Assembly (NCBI RefSeq): GCF_006345805.1
Contig: NW_021835949.1
Coordinates: forward strand, 1-40,768
Direction: 5' to 3'
Length of the DNA: 40,768 nucleotides
DNA from: Octopus sinensis
Taxonomy: Eukaryota
Shown: piece by piece, positions 11,803-40,768 of the stretch
Layout of the letters: every line of letters begins with the position of its first letter
How positions within the stretch are numbered: the stretch's first letter is position 1
Position numbers and translations under genes: made by a program
The notes under the pieces: generated by a model
Told to the model about the DNA's origin: nothing
The model's input: only the letters and a program-made list of their open reading frames with translations
Databases searched by the model: none

Positions 11803-11882
<80 letters not shown>

Positions 11883-12194: not shown

Positions 12195-13630
12195 TAAGTG
12201 TGGATATGTGCCTGCGGGAAGGTCTGCGTGTGCGTGTGTGTGTATGAGTGTATGTATGCAATGATAACACGTGTTTTGGTGTGTGTGTGCGTGTGTGTGT
12301 GTGTGTGTCGTTGTGGCTGTTAATCTTTGCGTGTTGTAGGGCTAGTAGTGTTTAAGGTCAAGGAAGAAGGATTTAGGAGTGGCTCCTTTTGTCTCTACCA
12401 CAGGTCAATAGTAGTTACTGCTAGTTTGAAGTATGTGTGTGTATGCATGTATGTATATGTATCGTGTGTGTGTTTTGTTTGTAGTGTGTGTGTGTATGTA
12501 TGTGTGTGTTCGTGTGTGTATGCGTAGAAATTGGGTGTGTGGCGAATAACTGTGCTTTACTTAGTGTATGTGTGCGTGTGTGCTTGTACGTGCGTATGTG
12601 TGTATACATGTATGTATAATTGTGTGCCGTGTGTATGGGATGTATATGTGGGCTCATTTGTGTGTGTGTGTGTGTGTGTGTACGTGCGTGCGTGTCGTAC
12701 GTGCGTGTAGTTGTGTGTGCGTGTACGTCTGCGTTTGTATGTGTGTATGTAAGCGTATATGGGTGTATATACATGTATCCATGGGGTTGTGAGTTTTGGG
12801 TGTGTGCATTCGTGTGCGTGTGTGCGTGCGTATGTGTGCGCATGTTTTTGTGTGCGTGTGTGTGTGTGTGCCTGTGTCTATATGTGTATACGCATGTGTA
12901 TGTGTGTGTGCGCGTGTAGGCGTATATTGTGTGTATGTATATGTATCGGTGTGTATGTGAATTTGTCTATGCGTGTGTGTGGAGGGGTGTTTGGAGTTGT
13001 GTGGGCATAATGTGCGTGCGTGTGCTTGTGTGCGTGTGTGCGCTTACGTGCGTGTATGTGCGTGTGTGTCTGTGCTCATGTGTGTACGTATCTGTATGAG
13101 TATTGTTTGTTGGAGGTATATGTAGGCATCTGTGCTGGTGTGTGTGTATGTACGTGTGTATGTGTGTGTGTGCGTTTATTGTGTGCGTATGTACGTGCGT
13201 GTATGTGTATGTGCGTGTGTGTGACCGTGGAGATGTGTGTCAGGTTGTGTTCATTTGATTGTGTGTACGCGCGTGTGCTTGAGTATGTGCGTGTATATGG
13301 CTATGTGTGTGTGTCTAAAGGTATGCGTGTCTGTGTGTGCATGGGGTTGGATGGGATAGGTTTCTGTGCATTCTTTGCGTGTGTGTACGTTTGTGTACGT
13401 GTGTGTGTGCACGGGCATATGTGTGTGTGCACGGGCATATGTGTGTGTGCACGGGCATATGTGTGTGTGCGCGTGGGTGTGTGTGGGTGTGTGTATTTGT
13501 GTATGTATGCGTGTGTGTATGTGTGTGGAAGTATGTGTGCGTATATGTGCATGTATGTTGTATGTGTGTGGTGTGTTGGAGATGTGTGTGTGTTCGTGGA
13601 TACGTGAGTATGTGTGTGTATGTGTTTGTG
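12195..13630. repeat. Cryptic (GT)n-rich low-complexity tract including 3 x ~20-bp minisatellite gtgtgtgtgcacgggcatat
   Basis: Directly visible; mirrored at 40240-40768. It is the source of the poly-CV and poly-HT ORFs. Confidence 0.9.
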
Positions 13631-13848
13631 TATAAGAACAATAATTTATAAAAATAATAAAATAATAAAAAATGTAAACACTAAAAAAACAAAAAAATTA
13701 TAAAACAATAAAATAATAAAATAAAAGACGTAATAGCACGTGAGGAAAGAAAATGAAAAAAAGACAAAGAAAAGAAAATAAGAAAAAAAGAAAAGAAGGA
13801 AGAAATAAGAAATAAAGTTGCTTGTTGCGGGAGGTGGAGACGCAGTCA

Positions 13849-16142
13849 CTAAGAGGAGGGGGCTGTGTTGAGTCCGTGCGGGGTATTAGTCTGTAAAAGT
13901 GAAAATAAACCGTTGCTCCAAGTGAAGCCTGGACTGTGGAGGTCCGTTGTGTGGGGCGAGACCAAACACAGAGATGTCACCGGGGAAATGGTTGGCCGAG
14001 CACAAGTGACGGGCGACGGGAGAATTGGTACGCAGCCGATCATCCCTTAGATGTTCGGCGAACCGGTCGGCCAGTCGGCGGCCCGTCTGTCCTACATAAA
14101 GCAGAGGTTGCATTTTATGCAATAGATGAGACCAGACGAAGTGCACGTAAAAGAATGTCTAATGCGTACAGTTCGCTGGTTGGAGCCGGTGACAGCAGTG
14201 GTGTTGGTGATGAAGGGGCAGGTGTTGCAGTGGGAGCTGGAGCACGGGAAGGATCCATGTGGGGCTGAGGGGGAAGAGGAGAGGGTGCTACGGACCAGGA
14301 GATCGCGTAGATTCCGGGCTCGTTTGAAGGATGACGAGTGTGGGTTGGGGAAAATGGGGCGGGTCGTGGGATCGAGCTGGAGACGACGGAAGGCAGGTAG
14401 TATCCTCCGACGAAAGGGTAGAGTGGAGGGGTGGAAAAGGAGGGGAAAGGGGGTGCGGTTAGTGGGTTGGTGAGAGGAGTGAGAAAGGGCGGTGGTGCGG
14501 TCGATTCGACGATAGCGGGCAAGGGCGTTCAAGACCAGGGTTGGGGGGTATCCTCGATGCTGAACAGGCGTGCCCGGTACCTGAGACTGGGTCTCAACAT
14601 CCTGGTCGCGGCTGCACAAGCGTCGAAGCGGAGGAACTGGGAGTAGGGGATCCTTTTGGTGTGGAAGGGATGGGAGGAGGAGAAGTTGATATAGAGGTGG
14701 GAATCCGTGGGTTTTGAAGAAGGCGGAGTTGGTGAGAGAGTGGGAGGGTGGTCGATGCTAAGAGAGATGTCAAGGAAGTTAACAGAGGTATTAAGAGATG
14801 GTAGAAGTGAATTGGAGAGAATTGGTGGAAGTTAGAGAGGAAAGAGATGAAGTGGCAGAGTTGTTCGCGGGAGAGGGATGTGGCGCCTATGCAGTCGTCT
14901 ATGTAGCGACCGTATAGCTCTGCGGTCGGCTCGGAGAATTGGGAGAATGCTTGGGCCTCAATGTAGCCAACAAAGAGATTGGCAAAATTGGGGACCATTC
15001 TCGTTCCCATCGCGACCCCAGACACTGTTCGTACATTTCCCCGGCGAACGTAAAGCAATTGAGGGTGAGGACGAGCTCTGCTAAGCGGAGAAGGGTGGGG
15101 TGCTGGGGTAGGGGTCGCTTCGACGGTCGAGGAAGTATTGGAGGGCTAAGAGACCGTCGTTGTGGGGAATCACAGTGTAAAGGGATTTGATGTCTAAGGT
15201 AAAGAGGAGGTGTGAGGGGCTGGGAGGGAAGGAAAAGGAATTGAAGAGACGAAGGGCGTGGTTAGTGTCATGTATGTGAGATGGGAGGGCAGAGACAGGA
15301 TGCGGTCGAGGTATAGGGAAAGCGATCGGTGGGAAAATTACAGGTGGAAACGATGGCGTGGCCAGGGTTATTGGGTTTATGAATTTTGGGAAGGAAATAG
15401 ATGGTAGAGGTTCGGGGTGTACGGACGATAAGGTTGGTGACGGTGGGTTGGAAAGCAGAAGAGGAGATGAGGTCGTGGATGGTGGAGGACACTCGCTGTT
15501 GGTAGGAGGAGGTGGGATTGGAGGGGAGTAGGCGATAGAAGAGGGGATTTTGAACATGGCTGAGCGCTTCCTCCCTGTATAGGTCCGCTCGCCACACCAC
15601 CACTTCTCCGCCTTTGTCTGTCGGTTTGATGACAATGTCATTGCGGCGACGGAGGTTGCGAAGGGCAATCGATTCAGCCCGAGTGAGGTTGTCTCGGAGA
15701 GGTCTTCTTTTGAAGTTGAATTGGTTGACCAACGCATTGCAGTCGTTCACGAACAAATCTAGGCTACTGAATTGGCCTGGGGGCGGCGTCCAGTTGGATG
15801 GGCGGCGCCCCAGCTCCAAAAAGCAATCCTGATTGTCGTGACGCTGTGGGGACGCGTGGGAAAACGCGCAAAGTTTGAGGCGGCGCAGGAACTGGTTGAC
15901 TTCGGTCCGGGTCTCAAATTCGTCACAGTGGCGCGTGAGAGGCATGAAGCGGAGTCCCTTACTGAGGAGAGAGCGCTCGACAGCGGAGAGGGGGAGATTG
16001 GGGGGTATAGTGACAACAGTGCGAGGAAGCAAGGTGGTGGGATGAGTGGGGTCAGGAAGAAGGGGTGCAGAGGTGTGGGGAGGAGAGTTGGAATAGTTGG
16101 GTGAAGATGGGGTAGGCGTAGGAAGGTCAGTGTGGGGTGTGT
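13849..16142 (-). mobile_element. Penelope-like retroelement (Neptune-type: RT, Cys-rich linker, C-terminal GIY-YIG), frameshifted
   Basis: Pieces: VVTIPPNLPLSAVERSLLSKGLRF, DIVIKPTDKGG.VVVW, IYFLPKIHK, LFTLDIKSLYTVIPH, GVAMGTRMVPNFANLFVG, YGRYIDDCIG, FPCSSSHCNTC, FTCTSSGLIYCIKC, LYVGQTGRRLADRFAEH, PHGLN. Confidence 0.92.
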
Positions 16143-19100
16143 AAATTTACAACATAAAATGTACGAAAAACTACACTTGCAAAACAATGTGACAACAGAA
16201 ATGAACGGACCGGTACCCGACGAAAATGACGACCGTCAAAATAATGGGCCGGGCGTTGTTCCTCATGTCCCGCAAATAAAACCCAAAAGACATAAATGGA
16301 CAAGTCAGGAATACATTTCTATCCTACACGCTTACTTTACAGCAGTGCTCTACCCAAAGAATGAAAATACAACAACACATACATACAAAATATGGAAGAA
16401 AAATAACATAAATAAAGACCTGGATACAACAATGAACCCTAATAAACTAGCAAATATACGGAGATATATTCTCAACGCAAAAAAATATCAGAAATAGAAA
16501 TAGAACATTTAAAAGAAAAAATACATCAGGAAAATGTAGATAGAAGCCACACAACAATGCCAAATAATATAAACATTGAAACAGTAAAACACGAAGACAA
16601 ACGTAACATTTCCAACAAAAACGATGTAAACAACAAAAAAAAAACCCAGACCGTAAGGATACATAATAATACACGACAAACAACAAGCCAAAACACAACA
16701 AACAAACATACGGATGAGATAGAAAGCGACACAAATCTAAAACCTGGAAACAACAAAGGAGAGCCTAATGATTATGAAACTATAAAAAGTAGAATAATCA
16801 AAGAACTGAAAACCACAGAGCTCAAAATGGACCACCGACCATACCTCCCAAAAATTAAAATAGACAAAACAACAACATCAATTATAAACAACATAAACCT
16901 AGCCGTCACGGAACTAATAGCCACTGAACCAAAAAGCGATATCACTGAGCTAAATGACTTAGTATACGCAGTAGCCACTGCAGCCACAAAAGAAGCTGGA
17001 TATTCACTCAAACCCATCCAAACAGGAGTATCACCACCCAAAACAAAATACAAAAAATAAGAAAAGATCTGTCGTTTCTTAATGAAATCAGTAGACAATC
17101 AACGCTACTGAGCAACAAAAGGAAAACAAAAATACTCCGAAAATACAACACCACAGAAAAAGATTTACCCGAGATAAAAGAAAAGCTGAAGCAAGATATC
17201 CTTGCCAAAGCACAAAGGATCCGCCGGTGCGAGAAACGCCAACGTTTCTTTGAACACAACAAACAGTTCAACTCCAACCCCAAAAAGTTCTACCAAGAAC
17301 TTGGCAAAAATAAAATAGAAATCACTGCAGCACCAACGGCAGAATTAGTGGAAGAATTCTGGAGAGAAATATGGTCGGCGAACGAACAACCAAAAAAAAA
17401 AAGGAGTCTTAAAACAACAAACTCAGCATCTGAGCAACTTTGGACCCCCATAACAACTGAAGAGGTCACCCAGGCACTGCAAAGACTAAGCAACTGGAAG
17501 GCACCTGGGCATGACAATATCCCCAACTTCTGGTTGAAATATCTAACAGGAATACACAAAAAGCTGGCTGAAAACTTTAACAACATACTGACAGAGCCAG
17601 AGACAATGCCTGAATGGCTCACGAAGGGGAAAACCATCTTAATTCCCAAATCAAATGAGACAGCAAAACCAGAAAACTACAGACCAATAACCTGTCTCCC
17701 TACAACGTACAAAGCATTTACTGCAGTAATATCGCAAAGATTGAACAAGCACCTGGACGAAAACAACCTGTTCCCAGAAGAGTAGAAAGGATGTCGCAAA
17801 GGCTCATATGGCTGTAAAGATCAACTAATGATCAATAAAGCCATAACTGAAGACAGCCACCGAAAGAAGAAAGGCCTCAGTATGGCCTGGATCGACTACA
17901 AAAAGGCGTTTGATAGCATCCCCCACACATGGATCCTCGAAACACTAGCCATGAACAAAGTTGCACCAATAATTATAAAGTACATAGGACACTCTATGAA
18001 TAAATGGCAAACAGTGCTACAGCTCCAAACAAAAGAGGGACTTGCGAAAACCAAAACCATCCCCATTAGAAGAGGAATATTCCAGGGAGATACGCTCTCT
18101 CCACTCCTTTTCTGCTTGGCACTGTCACCTCTATCGGATATGCTAAACAGAACTGGATGCGGATATAAATGTTACGGCAAAAAGATCAGCCGTCTTTTGT
18201 ATATGGATGACCTAAAATTTTACGCTACAAATGACAAACAGCTGGAAACACTATTAAAGACAGTTCATGGATTTACCAAAGAAATAGATATGAAATTTGG
18301 ATTAGAGAAATGCGCCTAAGTAACCCTGAAAAGAGGAAGACTAATTAAGAGTAGCAACATCACACTAGATAAAACCAATGAAATAAAAGAATTAGACCAA
18401 AGCCAAACTTACAAATACTTAGGAATCCATGAACTAGATAAGACACAACACACACAAATGAAAGAGAAAATAAAAAAGAATATTATAGAGGAGTTAGATC
18501 AATACTAAAAACAGAGCTCAATGCTAAGAACAAGATAATATGTATTAACACTTTAGCTGTCCCAGTTATAAGTTACAGCTACAATATCCTTAACTGGACA
18601 CTAAATGAACTAATCAAAATACCCTTTTACCCTTTTACTTGTTTCAGTCATTTGACTGCGGCCATGCTGGAGCATCACCTTTAATCGAGCAACTCGACCC
18701 CAGGACTTATTCTTTGTAAGCCCAGTACTTATTCTATCGGTCTCTTTTGCCGAACCGCTAAGTGACGGGGAAGCAAACACACTAGCATCGGTTGTCAAGC
18801 AATGCTAGGGGGACAAACACAGACACACAAACACACACACATACATATATATACATATATACGACAGGCTTCTTTCAGTTTCCGTCCACCAAATCAACTC
18901 ACAAGGCATTGGTCGGCCCGGGTCTATAGCAGAAGACACTTGCCCAAGGTGCCACGCAGTAGGACTGAACCCGGAACCATGTAGTTGATTAGCAAGCTAC
19001 TTACCACACAGCCACTCCTGAGGAAAACAAGAAAAATAATGACAGGATCTAGGATGCATCACCCAAAATCTACTAGGCACTGCACACATCCTACGCAGAA

Positions 19101-19214
19101 CACTTTCCATACAATAACCGTCAGAGCATCACAACAAATCACAGCACATACCCAAGGCACACAGAGCTGCTCTCGGTAGTGAATTGAAGGCACGATATAA
19201 AAAATATACTACTG
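16143..19214 (+). mobile_element. R4/Dong-type (RLE) non-LTR retrotransposon, internally deleted, SINE-interrupted
   Basis: N-terminal KRHKWTSQE..ILHAYF; RT motifs WKAPGHDNIPNFWLK, NYRPITCLPTTYK, AWIDYKKAFDSIPH, GIFQGDTLSPLLF, LLYMDDLK, FGLEKC. The CCHC/RLE region is deleted at ~19068. The 3' UTR ends ctactg followed by (AAT)n. Confidence 0.9.
18622..19020 (-). mobile_element. tRNA-derived SINE inserted into the R4 coding region
   Basis: Head with TGGCTGTGTGG A box and GGTTCAGTCC B box, CORE-like ccttgggcaagtgtctt, tail (gtaaaagg)n. It splits R4 between ...ELIKI and RKTRKIMT. Confidence 0.9.
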
Positions 19215-19760
19215 AATAATAATAATAATAATAATATAAAAATTAAATAATACGGCGATTATCTAACAAAGGGATGGGAATTTTTGTGATATAATTATTA
19301 AATAACTAGTAGATATAATTAGTATAATAAAAGGAAAGTGGTATATTTATTATTAAAAATGTAGAAAATAAAAGATTGTAAAAGCAGAAAGATAATAATA
19401 CTAACAAACAGAAACTAAATAAAAGTACTTAGAGAGAATGTTTATGAAATTCAGGGATTGATAATTACGAGAAATACTAACAATATTAAATTTAGTGGAT
19501 GGAAATTCATGCAAAAAAACCAACTCTAAATGCAAGGGAGAGAACAATCGAGAAATTATTATTATTTAGCTCCCTTCATCTGTGCATTGATTTTGAAAAC
19601 TCTTGTAGCCTCTCAAAATGCAGATCACCACCACTTTGCAGTTTACTTTTAAGTAAATATTTAAGAAATTCATAAAATGTATGGAGTACAATGAGAATAA
19701 TATTAGTATAATAAAGAAGACAGTTGTCTCATAGGAAAAGAAAGATTTATTAAGATATTA

Positions 19761-20160
19761 GGCGCAGGAGTGGCTGTGTGGTAAGTAGCTTGCTAACCAA
19801 CCACATGGTTCCGGGTTCAGTCCCACTGCGTGGCATCTTGGGCAAGTGTCTTCTGCTATAGCCCCGGGCCGACCAATGCCTTGTGAGTGGATTTGGTAGA
19901 CGGAAACTGAAAGAAGCCTGTCGTATATATGTATATATATATATGTGTTTCTTTGTGTGTCTGTATTTGTTCCCCTAGCATTGCTTGACAACCGATGCTG
20001 GTGTGTTTACCTCCCCGTCACTTAGCGGTTCGGCAAAAAAGAGACCGATAGAATAAGTACTGGGCTTACAAAGAATAAGTCCCGGGGTCGAGTTGCTCGA
20101 TTAAAGGCGGTGCTCCAGCATGGCCGCAGTCAAATGACTGAAACAAGTAAAAGAGAAGAG
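19761..20160 (+). mobile_element. Full-length tRNA-derived SINE with target-site duplication
   Basis: GGCGCAGGAGTGGCTGTGTGG...GGTTCAGTCCC head; agatattagg present at both junctions. Confidence 0.92.
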
Positions 20161-20289
20161 AGAAAGAGATATTAGGAAATAATTATTACATAATTTTGGT
20201 ATAAGAAAAGGAAGATCATATATTTATCCTTTATAGAGACAGAGTTTCCGAAATATAAAGCTGGATATCCTGGGAGGGAGCCACTCAAT

Positions 20290-20816
20290 TAGAGCGAGCC
20301 CAATACGCAACTGATACTTAATATATCACTCCCGAAAGGATGAAAGGCAAAGTCGACCTCGGCGCAGTTTGAACTTGGAACGTAGCGGCAGACAAAATAC
20401 CTATTTCTTTACTACCCACAAGGGGCTAAACACAGAGGGGACAAACAAGGACAGACAAAAGGATTAAGTCGATTACATCGACCCCAGTGCGTAACTGGTA
20501 CTTAATTTATCGACCCTGAAAGGTTGAAAGGCAAAGTCGACCTCGGCGGAATTTGAACTCAGAACGTAGCGGCAGACGAAATACCTATTTCTTTACTACC
20601 CACAAGGGGGTAAACACAGAGGGGACAAACAAGGACAGACAAAAGGATCAAGTCGATTACATCGACCCCAGTGCGTAAATGGTACTTATTTAATCGACCC
20701 CAATTGGATGAACGGCACAGTCGACCTCGGCGGAATTTGAACTCAGAACGTAACGGCAGACGAAATACGGCTACGCATTTCGCCCGGCGTGCTAACGATT
20801 CTGCCAGCTCGCCGCC
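20290..20816 (-). mobile_element. Second SINE family with ~2.6 tandem ~185-bp body repeats
   Basis: Head GGCGGCGAGCTGGCAGAATCG, B box GAGTTCAAATTCC; the unit gtattt.gtctgccg...gtagtaaagaaatag is repeated. gctggatatc lies on both flanks. Confidence 0.85.
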
Positions 20817-21709
20817 TTAATAGGGCTGGATATCAACAATAAAAATAATAACAACATTAAATTAATGATTATAGGTTCAAATATATAAGTAAATAGGGAA
20901 TAGGTAGTAATATAGGATAAGATTAGTATAATTCAGTATTGTAGAATGGGATAGATTAAAGTATATGACGTAAATAATCGGAAAAAAAATATTGATATGC
21001 AATCATTAAAATATTGTTTAAAATACATAATTATAGTTATAATACAGGTAGATACGCTAAAAATTACTTTTATACCTAAATATCTTATAAACATTGTTAG
21101 TATTTAAATATGTTCAAAGTATGAATTGTTTTATTGAAGATGATGCAATTGACAATAAAAATAGTTAAATATTATTACATGGAGTATAAATGATTATTAT
21201 TAGTGAAGAAGTGAAATAACAATAAAGCTATCATTTGTATTTATGCAGACATGAAAATCACTCATTTATGAATAAATGAATTTATTTATAAATTTATTTA
21301 TTTATTTATAGATAACATAAAATAATATATATATTATAAAATAAATTACGTGTACATGTTTTAATTTATGAAACAATCTATTGTGATATTTGAATTTTTC
21401 TATGGTTAAGTAAATTTCTCCATACTAATTTTCTCGTCATTTATAAATTCACACACATACTCACACACACACAAACACACACACGCACGAACGCAGACAC
21501 ACACACACACACACGCATGCATACTGATGCACAAATATATCTGCATATGTGTACACTTGCATTCTCGTATTTTGAACGATGTACATAGATGCCATGCTTG
21601 GGTATGTGTATGTATGTATGTATGTATGTATGTATGTATGTATGTATGTATGTATGTATGTATGTATATACGTATGTCAGGTCACTTTCGAGTGCTACTG
21701 GTAACATAT

Positions 21710-22255
21710 ATTTACTTATATATTTGAACCTATAATCATTAATTTCAAGTTGTTCATATTCTTCTTGATGATATCCAGCTGATATCCAGCCCTATATTTT
21801 GGAAATTCTGTCTCTATAAATGATTACAATATGATTTTCTTTTTCTTATACCAAAATTATGTAACAATTATTTCCTAATCTATTAATAAATCCCCTTTCT
21901 CCTCTTAGAAAACCCTCTTATTAATTTATATTCATATTATTCTCATTGTACTCCATACTTTTTATGAATTTCTTAAATATTTACTTATATTTTCATGACT
22001 AAAATTTAATATATATCATATTTCTCTTGTTGGTATCCATCCCTGTATTTCGTAAACATTGTCTCTAAATACATTTATTTGGTTTCAGTTTGTTAGTATT
22101 ATCGTTTATTTTCTACAGTTTTAGTAATAAATATACCACTTTCCTTTTTTTATACTAATTATATCTACTAGTTATTTTATAATTATATCACAAAAATTCT
22201 CTTCCGTTTTTATAGATAATCGTATTATTTTATATTAATTTTATTATTATTATCT
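21710..22255 (-). repeat. AT-rich unclassified repeat, copy B (SINE-free)
   Basis: Inverse homologue of 19225-20893 without the two SINEs. Confidence 0.8.
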
Positions 22256-22488
22256 TCCACAACTTCTAACGTTCTGTTTAAAGATTAACTTTGCGATTTT
22301 GGAACTTGATGTCGAGACATTAATATGTAACAAAGATTTTAAAAATTTTACCTGAGGATGTAGTTTACAATCAATCAACCATCCATCCAACCATCCATCC
22401 ATCCATCCATCCACCTATCCATCTATCAATCTGTCTCTTTTATACTTTGCATGTACCCTGTCTTCGCGTTGTTGTTTCTTTTTCTTGT

Positions 22489-22543
<55 letters not shown>

Positions 22544-22711
22544 AAATTAGGGAAAAAACCCTATTATGCAATTCAAACAACGATAGACATAAACCAAATC
22601 ATAAAGAAAACATAAAATATATTATAAAACATTTATATATATTATATATTTATATTGTGAAATTTGATTTAATACTAAATTGAATTTTCCCTGTATGGTT
22701 GGGTTATACTC

Positions 22712-22724
22712 CCTATTATTATTA

Positions 22725-22768
<44 letters not shown>

Positions 22769-22785
22769 TTTTATTATTATTATTA

Positions 22786-22826
<41 letters not shown>

Positions 22827-22858
22827 CATTATTTTTATTATTATTATTATTTTTATTA

Positions 22859-22892
<34 letters not shown>

Positions 22893-22952
22893 TTTATATT
22901 ATTATTATTATTTTTATTATTATTATTAATATTATTATTATTATTATTTTTA

Positions 22953-22983
<31 letters not shown>

Positions 22984-23001
22984 ATTATTATATTATTATT
23001 A

Positions 23002-23079
<78 letters not shown>

Positions 23080-23211
23080 TATTTTTATTATTATTATTTA
23101 TTTTTATTATTATTATTTTTATTATTATTATTTTTATTATTATTATTTTTATTATTATTATTATTATTTTTATTATTTTTATTATTATTATTATTATTTT
23201 TATTATTATTA

Positions 23212-23249
<38 letters not shown>

Positions 23250-23357
23250 TTTAACATTATTATTATTATTATATTATTATTATTATTTTTATTATTATTT
23301 TTATTATTATTATTATTTTTATTATTATATTATTATTATTATTTTTATTATATTATT

Positions 23358-23412
<55 letters not shown>

Positions 23413-23416
23413 TTTT

Positions 23417-23476
<60 letters not shown>

Positions 23477-23490
23477 TATTATTATTATTT
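22712..23490. repeat. ~780-bp imperfect (TAT)n microsatellite
   Basis: Directly visible. The mirror tract at ~31102-31168 is only about 65 bp. Confidence 0.95.
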
Positions 23491-25067: not shown

Positions 25068-25122
<55 letters not shown>

Positions 25123-25132
25123 TAATAATATT

Positions 25133-25201
<69 letters not shown>

Positions 25202-25220
25202 TATTATTATTATTATAATA
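25068..25220. repeat. (AAT)n tract at the R4 3' junction
   Basis: Directly visible. Confidence 0.95.
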
Positions 25221-29043: not shown

Positions 29044-31100
29044 GTTTTAAAAGGGTATGAAGGAGAAAAAGGCTCTACTTACTGTTGTTGTTGTTGTTTG
29101 GTGTGGGTGGCTCCCTTGTGCTTTTGGACGGGTGTTTCCATCGGGTTTTTGTATAGTTTTTTTGAGAAATTTCTCCCTAGCGACCGAACATCGTTTGAGT
29201 ATTTCTCTTTAATTATGTTATATTTATTTTCATTGATTTTTATGGCGAGAATGTGTGCTGGTGGTGTGTTGTGTGTGGGTATAATAAAATCTGTAATTTT
29301 CGTGTCTGTGTTTTCCTTCAGGTATGTAATAAGTTGCTCATCTTTTGTGTTTATTGCTGTAACGGTGTCTGTGTGTATTGGTGTGTGTGGCAGTAGTGGT
29401 GGAGAAAGTGTTGTTGATTGTTGTAGTGAGTGCTTGTTGTCGTTGTTGATGTTGGGAAGCTCTATTTGTTCGCGCCTCAACAGTGTGTCATGTGTTGCTT
29501 TGTGTTTTTTCTTCTCTTTTTCTTTAGTGGCACTGTGTACCACTCCCCTTTCTCACTATCAGTGCTCGCACAATCCGAACTGATTTGGTCTGGAAAGGGG
29601 ACGTCTGTCGGGTCCGTTTCAACAGTTTGGCGAAATGCTGTTCATTCTGTTGGAAACGGCGGCGCTGCTATTATTGTTGGTGTTGGTGACGGTGCATCTG
29701 TTTCCTTCTGTGTGCTCTTTCTTGGTGTTGGTGTTGGTTTGGTGGTGGTTGGAGGTGTTGTCGCTCTTCGTGGTGGTGGTGGTGGTGGTGCAGAAACACT
29801 TGGTGTCCCACGCTTTTGTTGTTGTTGTTGTTGTTGCTGCTGCTGCTGTTGCTGTTGTTGGTGCTGCTGCCTCTTTCTTTTCTTTGCTTATAAATGGGGC
29901 AGTCCTTTTTTTAGATGTTTTTCGCTGCTGCAGAGGTACCACTTTGATTTTCGCCCCTCTACAGCAACGTGTAATCTGGTGCCGTCCGGCAAATTAACCG
30001 AGTCGGGTATGGCATTTATATTTTCCTGCTGAATTTTCACCAGCAGCTGCACCCTCATACCTGACCAGTTCCGCTCTCGCAACCTGTGCACTTCCAGAAT
30101 AGTGGCAGTGTCCTCTATGTTATAGATGACAGCAGCCACTAGCCAAGATATGCTTAGCTCTGGCGGCACCTGGTCAATTAAAATTTTTGTTACTCGTCGA
30201 CCAAGATATGTTGGTACGAGCAACAAATTTTCTGTTTGCAAGGGCGAAATAGCATGCTTCCTTGCCTCTTCCTCCGTTGGGAATCGAACCTCCACGGTTC
30301 CAAACCGCTTTCCTTTGGTCACATAGCTCTTTTGACCCCATATGGGCTTTAGAGCTATCTCTAGTTTTTGTGGTGCTGCATTGCTCAATTTCTTTCGAAA
30401 ATCCTATAGATGATTGTTTTTATATTTGTGTCATTTATTAGTTGTTGTCGTGTATTGAGGAAAACACTGTTTCCCTGTTTCCTCAACAACTCTTTTGCAC
30501 TTTTAATTTCTTCCATCGTAACTTTTATTTCCTCCGAGCTCTGTTTTGCAGCGGAGGCGAAACCCTTACGATGACTTTCACTTTTTGTGTCGTTGCTGGT
30601 GGTGGTGTCGGTGTCGTTGCTGGTCCTCTTTCTCTCCTTCTCCGGTACTGGAGTAATGGTGGAGGGAAGAGCAGGGAAATCTTGAAAGACATCAAAAGTG
30701 ACGCCTTCGTTTACACTTTCATTTGGAACGTTGCACGCGCAGGCACGTTCTTTCCAATTTTCTTGTTTGCCTTTTAAGGCACGAAATGGGCGGTTTGGAG
30801 CCGTTTTCGAAATTGTCTGTGTTTGTGGAGGGTGTGATGTTTGAAGAAGGGAACAGCTAATTGCTCTCTTCAACGACATTTTTTTGTAAAATAAATGTGA
30901 ATGTTTGCAAAAATTTAAAAGTTCAAACGAAAATTTTACCCCTAATAGGGGAAAATTTGCCTAACCAACTAGCTCCACAAGAAGTTAGTTGGCTTGGCCA
31001 CACAAATATACAAAAATATTTAAACTTTTTCCGAAGTTTCAGGCAGAAATGGTGCAAAAGCTTACGAGCTTCGGGAAAACACATCCGCCCACTTCGGAAG
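26520..31100 (-). mobile_element. Tx1/L1-clade non-LTR retrotransposon, decayed and 3'-truncated
   Basis: 5' UTR, ORF1 remnants and ORF2 with APE and RT in the canonical order; 5' end abuts (TTA)n. Confidence 0.88.
29079..30879 (-). pseudogene. Tx1-like ORF1 remnants
   Basis: Frameshifted pieces 30385..30879, 29888..30388 (RRM-like FGTVEVRF..EEEA; degenerate knuckle KWYLCSSEKHLKKG), 29619..29942 and 29079..29543, directly upstream of ORF2. Confidence 0.7.
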
Positions 31101-31101
31101 A

Positions 31102-31168
<67 letters not shown>

Positions 31169-31639
31169 TTAGGGAGTATAACTCCAAACATACAGGGAAA
31201 AATTCAATTTAGTATTAAATCAAATTTCACAATATAAATATATAATATATATAAATGTTTTATAATATATTTTATGTTTTCTTTATGATTTGGTTTATGT
31301 CTATCGTTGTTTGAATTGCATAATAGGGTTTTTTCTCTAATTTATATATATAATATATATATAGATATAAATATATATTATATATATATATATACAACAA
31401 GAAAAAGAAACAACAACGCGAAGACAGGGTACATGCAAAGTATTAAAAGAGACAGATTGATAGATGGATAGGTGGATGGATGGATGGATGGTTGGATGGA
31501 TGGATGGTTGATTGTAAACTACATCCTCAGGTAAAATTTTTAATATCTTTGTTACATATTAATGTCTCGACATCAAGTTCCAAAATCGCAAAGTTAATCT
31601 TTAAACAGAACGTTAGAAGTTGTGGAAGATAATAATAAT

Positions 31640-32175
31640 AATAAAATTAATATAAAATAATACGAATATCTATAAAAACGGAAGCGAATTTTTGTGATAT
31701 AATTATAAAATAACTAGTAGATATAATTAGTATAAAAAAAAGGAAAGTGGTATATTTATTACTAAAACTGTAGAAAATAAACGATAATACTAACAAACTG
31801 AAACCAAATAAATGTATTTAGAGACAATGTTTACGAAATACAGGGATGGATACCAACAAGAGAAATATGATAAATATTAAATTTTAGACATGAAACTATA
31901 AGTAAATATTTAAGAAATTCATAGAAAGTATGGAGTACAATGAGAATAATATGAATATAAATTAATAAGAGGGTTTTCTAAGAGGAGAAGGGGGATTTAT
32001 TAATAGATTAGGAAATAATTGTTACATAATTTTGGTATAAGAAAAAGAAAATCATATTGTAATCCTTTATAGAGACAGAATTTCCAAAATATAGGGCTGG
32101 ATATCAGCTGGATATCATCAAGAAGAATATGAACAACTTGAAATTAATGATTATAGGTTCAAATATATAAGTAAT
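31640..32175 (+). repeat. AT-rich repeat copy B' (mirror of 21710-22255)
   Basis: Reverse-complement match. Confidence 0.85.
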
Positions 32176-33067
32176 TACATGTTACCAGTAGCACTCGAAA
32201 GTGACCTGACATACATACATACATACATACATACATACATACATACATACATACATACATACATACATACATACACATACCCAAGCATGGCATCTATGTA
32301 CATCGTTCAAAATACGAGAATGCAAATGTACACATATGCAGATATATTTGTGCATCAGTATGCATGCGTGTGTGTGTGTGTATGTGTCTGCGTTCGTGCC
32401 TGTGTGTGTTTGTGTGTGTGTGAGTATGTGTGTGAATTTATAAATGACGAGAAAAATAGTATGGAGAAATTTACTTAACCATAGAAAAATTCAAATATCA
32501 CAATAGATTGTTTCATAAATTAAAACATGTACGCGTAATTTATTTTATAATATATATATTATTTTATGTTATCTATAAATAAATAAATAAATTTATGAAT
32601 AAATTCATTTATTCATAAATGAGTGATTTTCATGTCTGCATAAATACAAATGATAGCTTTATTGTTATTTCACTTCTTCACTAATAATAATCATTTATAC
32701 TCCATGTAATAATATTTAACTATTTTTATTGTCAATTGCATCATCTTCAATAAAACAATTCATACTTTGAACATATTTAAATACTAACAATGTTTATAAG
32801 ATATTTAGGTATAAAAGTAATTTTTAGCGTATCTACCTGTATTATAACTATAATTATGTATTTTAAACAATATTTTAATGATTGCATATCAATATTTTTT
32901 TTCCGATTATTTACGTCATATACTTTAATCTATCCCATTCTACAATACTGAATTATACTAATCTTATCCTATATTACTACCTATTCCCTATTTACTTATA
33001 TATTTGAACCTATAATCATTAATTTAATGTTGTTATTATTTTTATTGTTGATATCCAGCCCTATTAA

Positions 33068-33595
33068 GGCGGCGAGCTGGCAGAATCGTTAGCACGCCGG
33101 GCGAAATGCGTAGCCGTATTTCGTCTGCCGTTACGTTCTGAGTTCAAATTCCGCCGAGGTCGACTGTGCCTTCCATCCAATTGGGGTCGATTAAATAAGT
33201 ACCAGTTACGCACTGGGGTCGATGTAATCGACTTAATCCGTGTGTCTGTCCTTGTTTGTCCCCTCTGTGTTTAGCCCCTTGTGGGTAGTAAAGAAATAGG
33301 TATTTTGTCTGCCGCTACGTTCTGAGTTCAAATTCCGCCGAGGTCGACTTTGCCTTTCAACCTTTCGGGGTCGATAAATTAAGTACCAGTTACGCACTGG
33401 GGTCGATGTAATCGACTTAATCCTTTTGTCTGTCCTTGTTTGTCCCCTCTGTGTTTAGCCCCTTGTGGGTAGTAAAGAAATAGGTATTTTGTCTGCCGCT
33501 ACGTTCCAAGTTCAAACTGCGCCGAGGTCGACTTTGCCTTTCATCCTTTCGGGAGTGATATATTAAGTATCAGTTGCGTATTGGGCTCGCTCTAA
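33068..33595 (+). mobile_element. Tandem-body SINE (mirror of 20290-20816)
   Basis: GGCGGCGAGCTGGCAGAATCG head plus repeated units. Confidence 0.85.
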
Positions 33596-33719
33596 TTGAG
33601 TGGCTCCCTCCCAGGATATCCAGCTTTATATTTCGGAAACTCTGTCTCTATAAAGGATAAATATATGATCTTCCTTTTCTTATACCAAAATTATGTAATA
33701 ATTATTTCCTAATATCTCT

Positions 33720-34115
33720 TTCTCTTCTCTCTTTTACTTGTTTCAGTCATTTGACTGCGGCCATGCTGGAGCACCGCCTTTAATCGAGCAACTCGACCCC
33801 GGGACTTATTCTTTGTAAGCCCAGTACTTATTCTATCGGTCTCTTTTTTGCCGAACCGCTAAGTGACGGGGAGGTAAACACACCAGCATCGGTTGTCAAG
33901 CAATGCTAGGGGAACAAATACAGACACACAAAGAAACACATATATATATATACGACAGGCTTCTTTCAGTTTCCGTCTACCAAATCCACTCACAAGGCAT
34001 TGGTCGGCCCGGGGCTATAGCAGAAGACACTTGCCCAAGATGCCACGCAGTGGGACTGAACCCGGAACCATGTGGTTGGTTAGCAAGCTACTTACCACAC
34101 AGCCACTCCTGCGCC
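33720..34115 (-). mobile_element. Full-length SINE (mirror of 19761-20160)
   Basis: Reverse-complement match. Confidence 0.9.
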
Positions 34116-34662
34116 TAATATCTTAATAAATCTTTCTTTTCCTATGAGACAACTGTCTTCTTTATTTATACTAATATTATTCTCATTGTACTCCATACTT
34201 TTTATGAATTTCTTAAATATTTGCTTAGAAGTAAACTGCAAAGTGGTGGTGATCTGCATTTTGAGAGGCTACAAGAGTTTTCAAAATCAATGCACAGATG
34301 AAGGGAGCTAAATAATAATGATTTCTTGATTGTTCTCTCCCTTGCATTATGCCTAGACTTGGTTTTTTTGCATGAATTTCCATCCACTAAATTTAATATT
34401 GTTAGTATTTCTCGTACTTATCAATCCCTGTATTTCATAAACATTCTCTCTATGTACTTTTATTTAGTTTCTGTTTGTTAGTATTATTTTCTCTGCTTTT
34501 ACAATCTTTTATTTTCTACATTTTTAATAATAAATATACCACTTTATTATACTAATTATATCTACTAGTTATTTAATAATTATATCACAAAAATGTCCAT
34601 CCCTTTGTTAGATAATCGCCGTATTATTTAATTTTTATATTATTATTATTATTATTATTATT

Positions 34663-37600
34663 CAGTAGCATATTTTTTATATCGTGCCTTCAATTCACTA
34701 CCGAGGGCAGCTCTGTGTGCCTTGGGTATGTGCTGTGATTTGTTGTGATGCTCTGACGGGTATTGTATGGAAAGTGTTCTGCGTAGGATGTGTGCAGTGC
34801 CTAGTAGATTTTGGGTGATGCATCCTAGATCCTGTCATTATTTTTCTTGTTTTCCTCAGGAGTGGCTCTGTGGTAAGTAGCTTGCTAATCAACCACATGG
34901 TTCCGGGTTCAGTCCTACTGCGTGGCACCTTGGGCAAGTGTCTTCTGCTATAGACCCGGGCCGACCAATGCCTTGTGAGTTGATTTGGTGGACGGAAACT
35001 GAAAGAAGCCTGTCGTATATATGTATATATATGTATGTGTGTGTGTTTGTGTGTCTGTGTTTGTCCCCCTAGCATTGCTTGACAACCGATGCTAGTGTGT
35101 TTGCTTCCCCGTCACTTAGCGGTTCGGCAAAAGAGACCGATAGAATAAGTACTGGGCTTACAAAGAATAAGTCCTGGGGTCGAGTTGCTCGATTAAAGGT
35201 GATGCTCCAGCATGGCCGCAGTCAAATGACTGAAACAAGTAAAAGGGTAAAAGGGTATTTTGATTAGTTCATTTAGTGTCCAGTTAAGGATATTGTAGCT
35301 GTAACTTATAACTGGGACAGCTAAAGTGTTAATACCTATTATCTTGTTCTTAGCATTGAGCTCTGGTTTTAGTATTGATCTAACTCGTCTATAATATTCT
35401 TTTTTATTTTCTCTTTCATTTGTGTGTGTTGTGTCTTATCTAGTTCATGGATTCCTAAGTATTTGTAAGTTTGGCTTTGGTCTAATTCTTTTAATTTATT
35501 GGTTTTATCTAGTGTGATGTTGCTACTCTTATTTAGTTTTCCTCTTTTCAGGGTTACTTTGGCGCATTTCTCTAATCCAAATTTCATATCTATTTCTTTG
35601 GTAAATCCATGAACTGTCTTTAGTAGTGTTTCCAGCTGTTTGTCATTTGTAGCGTAAAGTTTTAGGTCATCCATATACAAAAGACGGCTGATCTTTTTGC
35701 CGTAACATTTATATCCGCATCCAGTTCTGTTTAGCATATCCGATAGAGGTGACAGTGCCAAGCAGAAAAGGAGTGGAGAGAGCGTATCTCCCTGGAATAT
35801 TCCTCTTCTAATGGGGATGGTTTTGGTTTTCACAAGTCCCTCTTTTGTTTGGAGCTGTAGCACAGTTTGCCATTTATTCATAGTGTCCTATGTACTTTAT
35901 AATTGTTGGTGCAACTTTGTTCATGGCTAGTGTTTCGAGGATCCATGTTTGGGGGATGCTATCAAACGCCTTTTTGTAGTCGATCCAGGCCATACTGAGG
36001 CCTTTCTACCTTCTGTGGCTGTCTTCAGTTATGGCTTTATTGATCATTAGTTGATCTTACAGCCATATGAGCCTTTGCGGCATCCTTTCGCTGCTCTTCT
36101 GGAACAGGTTGTTTTCGTCCAGGTGCTTGTTCAATCTTTGCGATATTACTGCAGTAAATGCTTTGTACGTTGTAGGGAGACAGGTTATTGGTCTGTAGTT
36201 TTCTGGTTTTGCTGTCTCATTTGATTTGGGAATTAAGATGGTTTTCCCCTTCGTGAGCCATTCAGGCATTGTCTCTGGCTCTGTCAGTATGTTGTTAAGT
36301 TTTCAGCCAGCTTTTTGTGTATTCCTGTTAGATATTTCAACCAGAAGTTGGGGATATTGTCATGCCCAGGTGCCTTCCAGTTGCTTAGTCTTTACAGTGC
36401 CTGGGTGACCTCTTCAGTTGTTATGGGGGTCCAAAGTTGCTCAGATTCTGAGTTTGTTGTTTTAATACCCCTTTTTTTTTTTGGTTGTTCGTTCGCCGAA
36501 TTCTTCCACTAATTCTGCCGTTGGTGCTGCAGTGATTTCTATTTTATTTTTGCCAAGTTCTTGGTAGAACTTTTTGGGGTTGGAGTTGAACTGTTTGTTG
36601 TGTTCAAAGAAACGTTGGCGTTTCTCGTACCGGCGGATCCTTTGTGCTTTGGCAAGGATATCTTGCTTCAGCTTTTCTTTTATCTCGGGTAAATCTTTTT
36701 CTGTGGTGTTGTATTTTCGGAGTATTTTTGTTTTCTTTTTCTTGCTCAGTAGCGTTGATTGTCTACTGATTTCATTAAGAATCGACATATCTTTTCTCAT
36801 TTTTTGTATTTTGTTTTGGATGTTATTTATCCACAGGGTTTGTTTGGGTGGTGGTACTCCTGTTTGGATGGGTTTGAGTGAGTATCCAGCATCTTTTGTG
36901 GCTGCAGTGGCTGCTGCGTATACTAAGTCATTTAGCTCAGTGATATCGCTTTTTGGTTCAGTGGCTATTAGTTCCGTGACGGCTAGGTTTATGTTGTTTA
37001 TAATTGATGTTGTTGTTTTGTCTATTTTAATTTTTGGGAGGTATGGTCGGTGGTCCATTTTGAGCTCTGTGGTTTTCAGTTCTTTGATTATTCTACTTTT
37101 TATAGTTTCATAATCATTAGGCTCTCCTTTGTTGTTTCCAGGTTTTAGATTTGTGTCGCTTTCTATCTCATCCGTATGTTTGTTTGTGTTGTTTTGGCTT
37201 GCTGTTTGTCGTGTATTATTATGTATCCTTACGGTCTGGGTTTTTTTTTTTGTTGTTTACATCGTTTTGTTGGAAATGTTACGTTTGTCTTCGTGTTTTA
37301 CTGTTTCAATGTTTATATTATTTGGCATTGTTGTGTGGCTTCTATCTACATTTTCCTGATGTAATTTTTCTTTTAAATGTTCTATTTCTATTTCTGATAT
37401 TTTTTTGCGTTGAGAATATATCTCCGTATATTTGCTAGTTTATTAGGGTTCATTGTTGTATCCAGGTCTTTATTTATGTTATTTTTCTTCCATATTTTGT
37501 ATGTATGTGTTGTTGTATTTTCATTCTTTGGGTAGAGCACTGCTGTAAAGTAAGCGTGTAGGATAGAAATGTATTCCTGACTTGTCCATTTATGTCTTTT

Positions 37601-37744
37601 GGGTTTTATTTGCGGGACATGAGGAACAACGCCCGGCCCATTATTTTGACGGTCGTCATTTTCGTCGGGTACCGGTCCGTTCATTTCTGTTGTCACATTG
37701 TTTGCAAGAAGTGTAGTTTTTCGTACATTTTATGTTGTAAATTT
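34663..37744 (-). mobile_element. R4/Dong-type element (mirror of 16143-19214)
   Basis: ORF pieces 37388..37696, 36462..37058, 36057..36269 and 35369..35881; same SINE insertion and same C-terminal deletion. Confidence 0.9.
34857..35255 (+). mobile_element. SINE inside R4 (mirror of 18622-19020)
   Basis: Reverse-complement match. Confidence 0.9.
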
Positions 37745-40020
37745 ACACACCCCACACTGACCTTCCTACGCCTACCCCATCTTCACCCAACTATTCCAAC
37801 TCTCCTCCCCACACCTCTGCACCCCTTCTTCCTGACCCCACTCATCCCACTACCTTGCTTCCTGGCACTGTTGTCAATATACCCCCCAATCTCCCCCTCT
37901 CCGCTGTCGAGCGCTCTCTCCTCAGTAAGGGACTCCGCTTCATGCCTCTCACGCGCCACTGTGACGAATTTGAGACCCGGACCGAAGTCAACCAGTTCCT
38001 GCGGCACCCCAAACTTTTGCGCGTTTTCCCACGCGTCCCCACAGCGTCACGACAATCAGGATTGCTTTTTGGAGCTGGGGCGCCGCCCATCCAACTGGAC
38101 GCCGCCCCCAGGCCAATTCAGTAGCCTAGATTTGTTCGTGAACGACTGCAATGCGTTGGTCAACCAATTCAACTTTAAAAGAAGACTTCTCCGAGACAAC
38201 CTCACTCGGGCTGAATCGATTGCCCTTCGCAACCTCCGTCGCCGCAATGACATTGTCATCAAACCCGCAAACAAAGGCGGAGCAGTGGTGGTGTGGCGAG
38301 CGTACCTATACAGGGAGGAAGCGCTCAGCCATGTTCAAAATCCCCTCTTCTATCGCCTCCTCCTACCAACAGCGAGTGTCCTCCACCATCCACGACCTCA
38401 TCTCCTCTTCTGCTTTCCAACCCACCGTCACCAACCTTATCGTCCGTACACCCCGAACCTCTACCATCTATTTCCTTCCCAAAATTCATAAACGCAATAA
38501 CCCTGGCCACGCCATCGTTTCCACCTGTAATTTTCCCACCGATCGCATTTCCCTATACCTCGACCGCATCCTGTCTCTGCCCTCCCATCTCACATACATG
38601 ACACTAACCACGCCCTTCGTCTCTTCAATTCCTTTTCCTTCCCTCCCAGCCCCTCACACCTCCTCTTTACCTTAGACATCAAATCACTTTACACTGTGAT
38701 TCCCCACAACGACGGTCTCTTAGCCCTCCAATACTTCCTCGACCGTCGAAGCGACCTCTACCCCAGCACCCCACCCTTCTCCGCTTAGCAGAGCTCGTCC
38801 TCACCCTCAATTGTTTTACGTTCGCCGGGGAAATGTACGAACAGTGTCTGGGGTCGCGATGGGAATGAGAATGGTCCCCAATTTTGCCAATCTCTTTGTT
38901 GGCTACATTGAGGCCCAAGCATTCTCCCAATTCTCCGAGCCGACCGCAGAGCTATACGGTCGCTACATAGACGACTGCATAGGCGCCACATCCCTCTCCC
39001 GCGAACAACTCTGCCACTTCATCTCTTTCCTCTCTAACTTCCACCAATTCTCTCCAATTCACTTCTACCATCTCCAATACCTCTGTTAACTTCCTTGACA
39101 TCTCTCTTAGCATCGACCACCCTCCCACTCTCTCACCAACTCCGCCTTCTTCAAACCCACGGATTCCCACCTCTATCTCAACTTCTCCTCCTCCCATCCC
39201 TTCCACACCAAACAGGCCATCCCCTACTCCCAGTTCCTCCGCCTTCGACGCTTGTGCAGCCGCGACCAGGATGTTGAGACCCAGTCTCAGTACCGGGCAC
39301 GCCTGTTCAGGCATCGAGGATACCCCCCAACCCTGGTCTTGAACGCCCTTGCCCGCTATCGTCGAATCGACCGCACCACCGCCCTTTCTCACTCCTCTCA
39401 CCAACCCACTAACCGCACCCCCTTTCCCCTCCTTTTCCACCCCTCCACTCTACCCTTTCGTCGGAGGATACTACGTGCCTTCCGTCGTCTCCAGCTCGAT
39501 CCCACGACCCGCCCCATTTTCCCCAACCCACACTCGTCATCCTTCAAACGAGCCCGGAATCTACGCGATCTCCTGGTCCATAGCACCCTCTTCTCTTCCC
39601 CTCAGCCCCACATGGATCCTTCCCGTGTTCCAGCTCCCACTGCAACACCTGCCCCTTCATCACCAACACCACTGCTGTCACCGGCTCCAACCAGCGAACT
39701 GTACGCATTAGACATTCTTTTACGTGCACTTCGTCTGGTCTCATCTATTGCATAAAATGCAACCTCTGCTTTATGTAGGACAGACGGGCCGCCGACTGGC
39801 CGACCGGTTCGCCGAACATCTAAGGGATGATCGGCTGCGTACCAATTCTCCCGTCGCCCGTCACTTGTGCTCGGCCAACCATTTCCCCGGTGACATCTCT
39901 GTGTTTGGTCTCGCCCCACACAACGGACCTCCACAATCCAGGCTTCACTTGGAGCAACGTTTATTTTCACTTTTACAGACTAATATCCCGCACGGACTCA
40001 ACACAGCCCCCTCCTCTTAG
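37745..40020 (+). mobile_element. Penelope-like (Neptune-type) element (mirror of 13849-16142)
   Basis: Same RT and GIY-YIG motifs; ORF pieces 37855..38124, 38811..39089, 39252..39755 and 39724..40020. Confidence 0.92.
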
Positions 40021-40768
40021 TGACTGCGTCTCCACCACCCGCAACAAGCAACTTTATTTCTTATTTCTTCCTTTTTTTTTATTTTTTTCTTATTTTCTTT
40101 TCTTTGTCTTTTTTCATTTTCTTTCCTCACGTGCTATTACGTCTTTTATTTTATTATTTTATTGTTTTATAATTTTTTTGTTTTTTTAGTGTTTAAATTT
40201 TTTATTATCTTATTATTTTTATAAATTATTGTTCTTATACACAAACACATACTCACGTATCCACGAACACACACACATCTCCAACACACCACACACATAC
40301 AACATACATGCACATATACGCACACATACTTCCACACACATACACACACGCATACATACACAAATACACACACCCACACACACCCACGCGCACACACACA
40401 TATGCCCGTGCACACACACATATGCCCGTGCACACACACATATGCCCGTGCACACACACACGTACACAAACGTACACACACGCAAAGAATGCACAGAAAC
40501 CTATCCCATCCAACCCCATGCACACACAGACACGCATACCTTTAGACACACACACATAGCCATATACACGCACATACTCAGCACACGCGCGTAGTACACA
40601 CAATCAAATGAACACAACCTGACACACATCTCCACGGTCACACAACGCACATACACATACACGCACGTACATACGCACACAATAAACGCAACACACACAT
40701 ACACACGTACATACACACACACCAGCACAGATGCCTACATATACCTCCAACAAACAATACTCATACAG

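Follow-up and report, generated by a model that had tools for sequence, protein, structure and literature searches.

The contig VCDQ01000929.1 of the Octopus sinensis assembly GCA_006345805.1 raises the question of whether its two long inverted arms, composed of decayed retroelements and simple repeats, form a true inverted duplication on one chromosome or are two haplotypes joined by the assembler, a distinction which cannot be drawn from sequence alone. The window analyzed here is this entire contig (40,768 bp), and all coordinates refer to it. We lean, tentatively, toward a genuine head-to-head (fold-back-type) junction that bounds a true inverted duplication. The evidence that bears on the question, on either side, lies in the divergence of the arms and in one inner junction (23662/23669), at which a truncated long interspersed nuclear element (LINE) of the R4-like type is joined to a second LINE, here termed X. 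This contig is what one would expect from a true duplication and, just as much, from a false haplotypic one; the two readings are weighed below.

Two inverted arms of different sequence

The locus consists of two arms around an asymmetric spacer, within which self-comparison detected no inverted self-match:

13092-23663, + strand: left arm (minimum extent; its mirror runs off the contig)
23664-30929: spacer, 7266 bp, comprising the truncated R4-like LINE, (AAT)n, and all of LINE X except its first ~170 bp
30930-40768, - strand: right arm, the reverse complement of the left arm, stopping at the contig end

Both a repeat search and self-BLAST recover the arms as one collinear inverted match (13092-22781 against 40768-31102; 9756 columns, 97.1% identity including gaps), which resumes beyond a (TAT)n block (23422-23663 against 31168-30930) and cannot be due to chance. 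A global alignment made with MAFFT, which follows the arms as far as their homology extends, gives 9823 columns with 137 substitutions (1.39%, or 98.6% identity at the level of substitutions) and 47 indel events, more than half of which (26) are of 1 bp. A first-pass annotation of this DNA had described a mirrored order of elements in arms of at least 9.8-10.6 kb around a ~7.2-kb spacer; both the order and the arms are borne out, and the spacer measures 7266 bp. The same annotation had put the substitutions between the arms at ~2%, which is too high, and had taken 13092 as the start of the arm, which is only the mirror of the contig end and marks no boundary. Because the contig is complete and 13092 merely mirrors its end, the arm length of 10.57 kb is a minimum.

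Differences between the arms are spread throughout, including the innermost 173 columns (6 substitutions and 1 indel), and they include private indels of 10, 17, 20, and 28 bp that are flanked by microhomology, as is usual for genuine deletions. Two of these had been noted before: the 17-bp stretch missing from the right arm at ~36500 is present as given, and the one described for the left arm as 27 bp at ~17045 is a stretch of 28 bp missing at 17037, with CCAAA on either side. By far the largest difference is the 709-bp gap in the length of the (TAT)n block, which could reflect either real length instability or assembly collapse. Because the differences extend throughout, the deletions are flanked by microhomology, and the spacer is non-palindromic, the arms are two different genomic sequences. 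The spectrum of substitutions (transitions to transversions 76:76 overall, with 9 CpG-type changes) does not tell alleles, paralogues, or errors apart. A mutation shower beside the breakpoint was also considered and rejected: the 6 substitutions in the innermost 173 columns, where 2.3 would be expected, are matched by 8-10% of equal-sized windows and are not significant.

From the outer end inward, the arms carry a putative Penelope-like element (PLE), an R4-like LINE with an insertion resembling a short interspersed nuclear element (SINE), a second SINE-like copy, an array of a 184-bp unit, AT-rich sequence, (TAT)n, and the 5' end of X. The corresponding features, with those that encode or resemble reverse transcriptase (RT) so marked, are as follows:

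13092-13633, left arm: TG-rich low-complexity stretch
~13900-16100, - strand (mirror 37787-39969, + strand): decayed PLE, frameshifted, with RT-like motifs and a C-terminal GIY-YIG-like motif
~16200-19252, + strand (mirror 37685-34622, - strand): arm copy of the R4/Dong-like LINE, with RT at ~17642-18431
18632-19020 (mirror 34857-35245): SINE-like insertion within this LINE, ~390 bp
19765-20153, - strand (mirror 33731-34111): second SINE-like copy, inverted relative to the first
20288-20768, + strand (mirror 33116-33596): tandem array of a 184-bp unit, 2.6 copies, ~90% identity
20770-22713 (mirror 31172-33114): AT-rich block with (TGTA)n and (TA)n microsatellites
22714-23489, + strand (mirror 31102-31168): (TAT)n, the target microsatellite 5' of X; 776 bp and impure (88% matches) on the left, 67 bp and perfect on the right
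23490-23662, + strand: 5' end of LINE X (first ~170 bp) as it occurs in the left arm, broken off at the junction

Several lesions are common to both arms. The frameshift motif of the PLE occurs once per arm at mirrored positions, 15014 (- strand) and 38842 (+ strand), and both the SINE-like insertion in the R4-like LINE and the deletion of its C-terminal region are collinear in the two arms. The segment was thus copied, or came to exist in two versions, after its elements had decayed, as the first-pass annotation had proposed.

The PLE assignment is based on motifs. No whole frame of the PLE region has a Pfam RT match; the GIY-YIG match (E = 0.0019; 18.9 bits, against a Pfam cut-off of 22.6) was obtained on a piece stitched across one frameshift, and the RT-like motifs LPKIHK and YIDD were seen by eye. 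The SINE-like copies within the arms are 91-95% identical, and partial copies occur at 7197-7314, 10881-11094, and 11231-11371; scans for tRNA and Rfam families gave no match to this repeat.

The inner-left junction and the truncated LINE

The spacer, together with the junction at its left end, resolves into the following features, among them the open reading frames (ORFs) of X, which is of the apurinic/apyrimidinic endonuclease (APE) type:

23663-23668, + strand: junction filler TGGCAA, a direct copy of TGGCAA at 23672-23677, its first T ambiguous with X
23669-25067, + strand: truncated copy of the R4-like LINE, ~1.4 kb, 5'-truncated, with one internal deletion and without the RT core
25068-25220, + strand: (AAT)n, 51 units, in which the tail of the truncated LINE and the microsatellite 3' of X run together
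25221-31101, - strand: LINE X, APE-type, essentially full length; its first ~170 bp (31101-30930) belong to the right arm, and its 3' end is placed only to the range 25221-26250
30960-29891, - strand: ORF1-like frames of X
28902-28429, - strand: endonuclease of X (Exo_endo_phos)
27421-26411, - strand: RT of X (RVT_1)

Homology to X stops at 23662/23663, ~170 bp into its 5' end, and homology to the R4-like LINE begins at 23669; between them lies the templated filler, counted as 5-6 nt because its first T could belong to X. Templated filler of this kind is a signature of repair or template switching, found in Pol-theta end joining and at LINE 5' junctions. The two partners have no shared repeat at the join, and so an overlap-based assembler could not have created it without a read that holds it. 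We consider it very probable that the junction 23662/23669 is a real structural variant of O. sinensis.

The truncated copy is made of two segments that match the R4-like LINE of the arm: segment A (23669-23831) corresponds to arm positions 18002-18160 with 91% identity, and segment B, from 23809, corresponds to arm position 19035 onward, with an imperfect overlap of ~20 nt between the segments at the internal deletion. Its ORF (23813-24967) remains open over ~384-390 codons and has a putative zinc knuckle and a C-terminus resembling a restriction-like endonuclease (RLE). Within this ORF, a perfect (GAA)22 tract at 24068-24133 encodes 22 consecutive glutamate residues. The 3' end of the truncated copy, ACTACTG(AAT)n, is the same as that of the arm copy, and its tail lies inside the (AAT)n that is 3' of X; to judge from this arrangement, the 3' junction looks like a normal site-specific insertion into (TAA)n. 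The 5' flank, in contrast, is not microsatellite: it is joined to the same locus in inverted orientation, ~5.7 kb away. The two breakpoints, in X at ~30930 and in the LINE target at 25068-25220, have the same orientation and are ~5.7 kb apart.

The RT of the arm copy (Pfam RVT_1, 4.6e-32) is nearest to R2 proteins (E 1e-24 to 2e-21, compared with 3.5e-15 for L1 ORF2p). For the ORF of the truncated copy, the C-terminus aligns weakly to the zinc-knuckle/RLE region of R2 (residues ~918-1138; E 0.002-0.012), the zf-RVT match (1e-5) falls just under the Pfam cut-off, and CxxC...H...C and (R)xD...D-type motifs can be seen by eye. Both copies end in ACTACTG(AAT)n, as (AAT)7 in the arm copy, and both sit in AT microsatellites. 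LINEs of the Dong/R4 clade, in the R2 group, insert in (TAA)n microsatellites, and the octopus element resembles them in its RT, in its putative zinc knuckle and RLE-like C-terminus, and in its (AAT)n ends; its two copies differ from the clade in that the spacer copy is without the RT core and the arm copy has its zinc-knuckle/RLE region deleted. On these resemblances of RT, C-terminal region, and tail, rather than on phylogeny, we describe the element as R2-group and Dong/R4-like.

LINE X has Pfam matches to Exo_endo_phos (1.5e-7) and RVT_1 (1.6e-4), which identify it as an APE-type LINE, and its relatives combine PF03372, PF00078, and PF13966 (APE, RT, and zf-RVT), none of them being named. 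A search of PDB sequences did not place it, as L1 ORF2p matched only at E ~0.4, and the Tx1 label given earlier to X, seen here in one copy with (ATT)n on both sides, is a tentative one. On its own strand, X has (ATT)n on the 5' side (31168-31102) and on the 3' side (the (AAT)n at 25068-25220), and this presence of microsatellite on both sides indicates that X sits in an AT-trinucleotide microsatellite. Its ORF2 (26411-28902, - strand) is split over at least four overlapping frames, each open for 120-340 codons. Either its decay is at an early stage or the long-read consensus still contains single-base indel errors, in which case some of the 26 indels of 1 bp that distinguish the arms may be errors too.

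These features may be accommodated by the following sequence of steps. The ancestral locus would have had the order PLE - R4-like LINE with SINE - SINEs - AT-rich sequence - (TAT)n - LINE X - (ATT)n. A Dong/R4-like LINE would have started target-primed reverse transcription in the (TAA/AAT)n target just 3' of X, and ~1.4 kb of its RNA would have been copied, with one internal template jump. The 5' end of the cDNA, instead of being joined to the other side of the target, would have re-copied 6 nt (TGGCAA) and then been connected, in the opposite orientation, with a DNA end that lay ~5.7 kb away and ~170 bp into X from its 5' end; this DNA end may have belonged to the sister chromatid or to a collapsed fork. 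The product would be an inverted copy, X[1-170] - (TAT)n - AT-rich sequence - SINEs - R4 - PLE, of at least 10.6 kb, and the chromosome must have become monocentric again through a second junction that lies beyond the contig. The arms would have diverged afterwards, by 1.4% in substitutions, by small microhomology-flanked deletions, and by the 709-bp microsatellite change. The arms, their shared lesions, the anatomy of the junction, and the elements with their orientation are observed in the sequence, whereas it is by inference that this scheme makes a single event of the LINE insertion and the inversion and places the two arms on the same chromosome.

The first-pass annotation had suggested that the duplication was initiated by the endonuclease of the PLE or of the R4 element. 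The R4-like element gains support from the present analysis, at the inner junction and not in the manner proposed; a role for the PLE is unsupported, as this element is set back by at least 0.8 kb within the arms, whose outer ends are outside the contig. The formation of a cruciform, also suggested, is very unlikely with a 7.3-kb asymmetric spacer, the instability of inverted repeats being dependent on spacer length.

Duplication, alleles, or artefact

A true inverted duplication needs no assembler error. In its favor, a read of 10-20 kb would in many cases cover the whole 7.3-kb segment between the arms, and would contradict any false path through it, and no near-identical second copy of the caspase gene that flanks the left arm is on record.

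Almost as probable is a false haplotypic duplication, in which the junction itself is real and derives from a heterozygous inversion of the spacer segment, and a haplotype switch in assembly has turned two alleles into two arms. The inverted segment would be X from position 171 to its 3' end, and the bridging LINE may or may not have been part of it. In the graph built by the assembler, this segment in one haplotype would overlap the reverse complement of the other haplotype, and a path could then come in by the left flank of haplotype B and go out by the same flank of haplotype A, reversed, to give flank - arm (B) - segment - arm (A, reversed); this path follows from graph logic, and we found no paper that describes the exact artefact. 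Divergent haplotypes retained as false paralogues, and gapless chimeric joins, are documented errors of long-read assembly (PMC9668749). A balanced inversion requires no extra junction for the chromosome to be viable. In addition, the contig is a short one that forms a separate record of a chromosome-level assembly, and it breaks off after ~9.8 kb of the right arm, at a distance from the spacer of about one long read. On the other side, allelic arms require a structural polymorphism as well as an assembler error at the branch point, and the long reads just mentioned should often have exposed the error. The lack of a near-identical second caspase allele on record also counts against them, although weakly, since such an allele may have been purged or left unannotated.

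Several observations weigh against a LINE-bridged true duplication, and the first two of them also speak for alleles. The divergence between the arms (1.39%) is about the genome-wide heterozygosity of 1.22% given in the genome paper of the sister species O. vulgaris, which serves here as a stand-in for the sequenced O. sinensis animal, and the arm alignment contains no private transposable element (TE) insertion in either arm. The right arm runs into the contig end at 40768 and has no further sequence in the assembly; as the contig ends inside this arm, neither the outer boundaries of the arms nor the second junction that a duplication requires are visible. A search by way of the flanking caspase gene gave no allele or orthologue of the locus. 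No independent copy of the junction was found: the nearest relative of the ORF in the truncated LINE, 150 bp from the junction, is 89% identical and on a 990-bp contig, and the remaining relatives are ~50% identical and from other phyla. The ORFs of the arms and spacer, including those near the right end, are not on record. Finally, the LINE could already have been present and simply been cut by an unrelated breakpoint.

The last of these points leads to a doubtful but still substantial alternative, that the junction arose without retrotransposition, for example by fork stalling and template switching or microhomology-mediated break-induced replication (FoSTeS/MMBIR) or by two-break end joining; one break would have fallen by chance within a longer R4-like copy that predated the event, and the other at the 5' end of X. 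Such an explanation concerns only the cause of the junction, and it overlaps with both the duplicated and the allelic readings of the arms. MMBIR and alternative end joining, too, typically leave a templated filler of 5-6 nt and 1 nt of microhomology, a breakpoint within a LINE is unremarkable in a genome of this kind, over half of which is TE, and the truncated copy, which already has an internal deletion, may be old. However, the LINE has its 3' end exactly in the target microsatellite of its family, with only 1.4 kb of LINE between that site and the breakpoint, and no 5' part of an R4-like copy was found elsewhere in the contig. The ~390-codon frame of the truncated copy is still open, which suggests that the copy is young, and substitutions show no significant excess beside the junction (6, against 2.3 expected), an excess that error-prone replicative repair might predict.

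We consider it somewhat the more probable view that the LINE insertion is the bridging event rather than a bystander cut by a breakpoint. The full form of the duplication that we tentatively favor, in which an RLE LINE (Dong/R4-like) bridged two chromatids head to head in the germline and the divergence of the arms marks it as long established, joins this to the duplication itself, and as a whole is rather unlikely.

A library or read artefact, such as a missed SMRTbell adapter, a snap-back read, or a ligation chimera that seeded the contig, is very improbable. The contig is small and palindromic in outline, and the 2020 O. sinensis assembly of Li and co-workers is reportedly PacBio-based. Palindromes due to missed adapters have no spacer or a tiny one and identical arms; the 7266-bp asymmetric spacer and the differing arms rule out a missed-adapter or snap-back read here. 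The 137 substitutions, the microhomology-flanked deletions of 10-28 bp, the 709-bp microsatellite gap, and the presence of differences right up to the junction are likewise foreign to such artefacts, and in a ligation chimera formed at random the two partners would not come from one locus, 5.7 kb apart.

Hardly credible at all is a copy made at the RNA level, in which the R4-like RT jumped onto the 3' end of a read-through transcript ~170 nt into X and copied more than 10 kb, the left arm being the retrocopy: R2-group RTs do make end-to-end template jumps with few added nucleotides, and the truncated copy has a jump-like internal deletion and a 6-nt filler, but both the transcript and the cDNA would have to exceed 10.6 kb and traverse 776 bp of (TAT)n as well as AT-rich sequence with many terminator-like signals, and the arm has no spliced introns or defined 5' end. 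Even jointly, read artefacts and an RNA-level copy are highly improbable.

Known systems and the setting of the locus

Inverted repeat duplications, LINE-associated rearrangements, and haplotypic false duplications are all known kinds of structure, and the locus has points of likeness to each. In human tumors, L1-mediated fold-back inversions and L1-bridged duplications have been described, among them a case in which an L1 bridged sister chromatids head to head, with breakpoints 5.5 kb apart (Rodriguez-Martin et al., 2020; PMC7058536). The octopus locus shares with them the same-orientation breakpoints (~5.7 kb apart here), a short 5'-truncated LINE as the putative bridge, a LINE 3' end at the endonuclease target, and head-to-head duplicated sequence as the result. 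It differs in that the bridge is a site-specific RLE LINE, the setting is the cephalopod germline, and the arms have diverged by 1.4%; moreover, the tumor cases were proved by a copy-number step, whereas the octopus locus is known from the sequence of one contig, outside which the resolving second junction would lie.

Like large inverted segmental duplications and palindromes, the octopus arms are at least 10 kb long, are more than 98% identical, surround several kb of unique spacer, and consist mostly of repeats. Classic palindromes, however, are held above 99.9% identity by gene conversion and often contain genes, whereas the octopus arms are 98.6% identical and contain only dead retroelements. 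The comparison with false haplotypic duplications (PMC9668749) is similarly divided: the octopus copies differ at about the level of heterozygosity and lie at the end of a small, unplaced contig, but the usual false duplications are tandem, or on separate contigs by gaps; the copies seen here are inverted and in one gapless contig, with unique sequence between them, and a false origin would in addition need a heterozygous inversion.

If the duplication is true, the locus would be a natural and well-preserved germline example of a LINE-bridged inverted rearrangement in which the target microsatellite, the point of truncation, and the templated filler can be read at base level; if it is also LINE-bridged, the mechanism known for L1 in cancer would extend to an R2-group element in the germline of a mollusc. 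If it is false, it would show in a worked case how a heterozygous inversion can pass for a giant palindrome when long reads are assembled, and it would caution surveys of TEs and double-stranded RNA (dsRNA) against counting such structures in heterozygous invertebrate genomes. Either way, the inner-left junction is probably a real structural variant of O. sinensis.

This segment of dead retroelements has no implied function, and transcription across its full length would be needed for a long hairpin RNA to form. For a hairpin of 10 kb, one transcript would have to cover at least 28 kb, AT-rich sequence and long microsatellites included. A true duplication would make the locus a candidate for producing long hairpin RNA, in an animal whose ADAR editing is very active. 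Such a hairpin-capable locus of at least 10.6 kb would, if transcribed, provide one long dsRNA against four retroelement classes. More plausible as substrates for dsRNA formation and ADAR than the giant repeat are the short SINE-like pairs: inside each arm, two such copies form an inverted pair (18810-19020 and 19765-19975 on the left) that is 91% complementary, ~744 nt apart.

The contig appears to be unplaced, having a record of its own beside chromosome-sized records of the same assembly (e.g., one of 135.9 Mb), and self-BLAST encountered no runs of N in it. Its start is (AAT)-rich and its end is low-complexity sequence rich in CA, which is the probable reason for the contig breaking at these points.

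The left flank of ~13 kb contains the caspase ORF (2128-2955, + strand), which is intronless, encodes 275 amino acids, and matches Pfam Peptidase_C14 (3.4e-51). It is a singleton at 90% clustering, with octopus caspase-3-like proteins as its nearest relatives at only 51% identity. No near-identical second copy or allele is on record, the ORF being recorded on this contig only, at the same coordinates and in a locus whose recorded sequence is identical to positions 1-12955, and no near-identical orthologue was found in O. vulgaris, though the two species split only ~2.5 million years ago; the ORF may be a diverged retrogene or a lineage-specific paralogue. Just downstream of it lies a direct repeat of ~1 kb (3760-4800 and 5019-6115, 77-88% identity). 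The same flank carries five long, impure (TA)n arrays (246-504, 7329-7578, 9164-9436, 10545-10757, and 11374-11897), which cross-match in every self-comparison.

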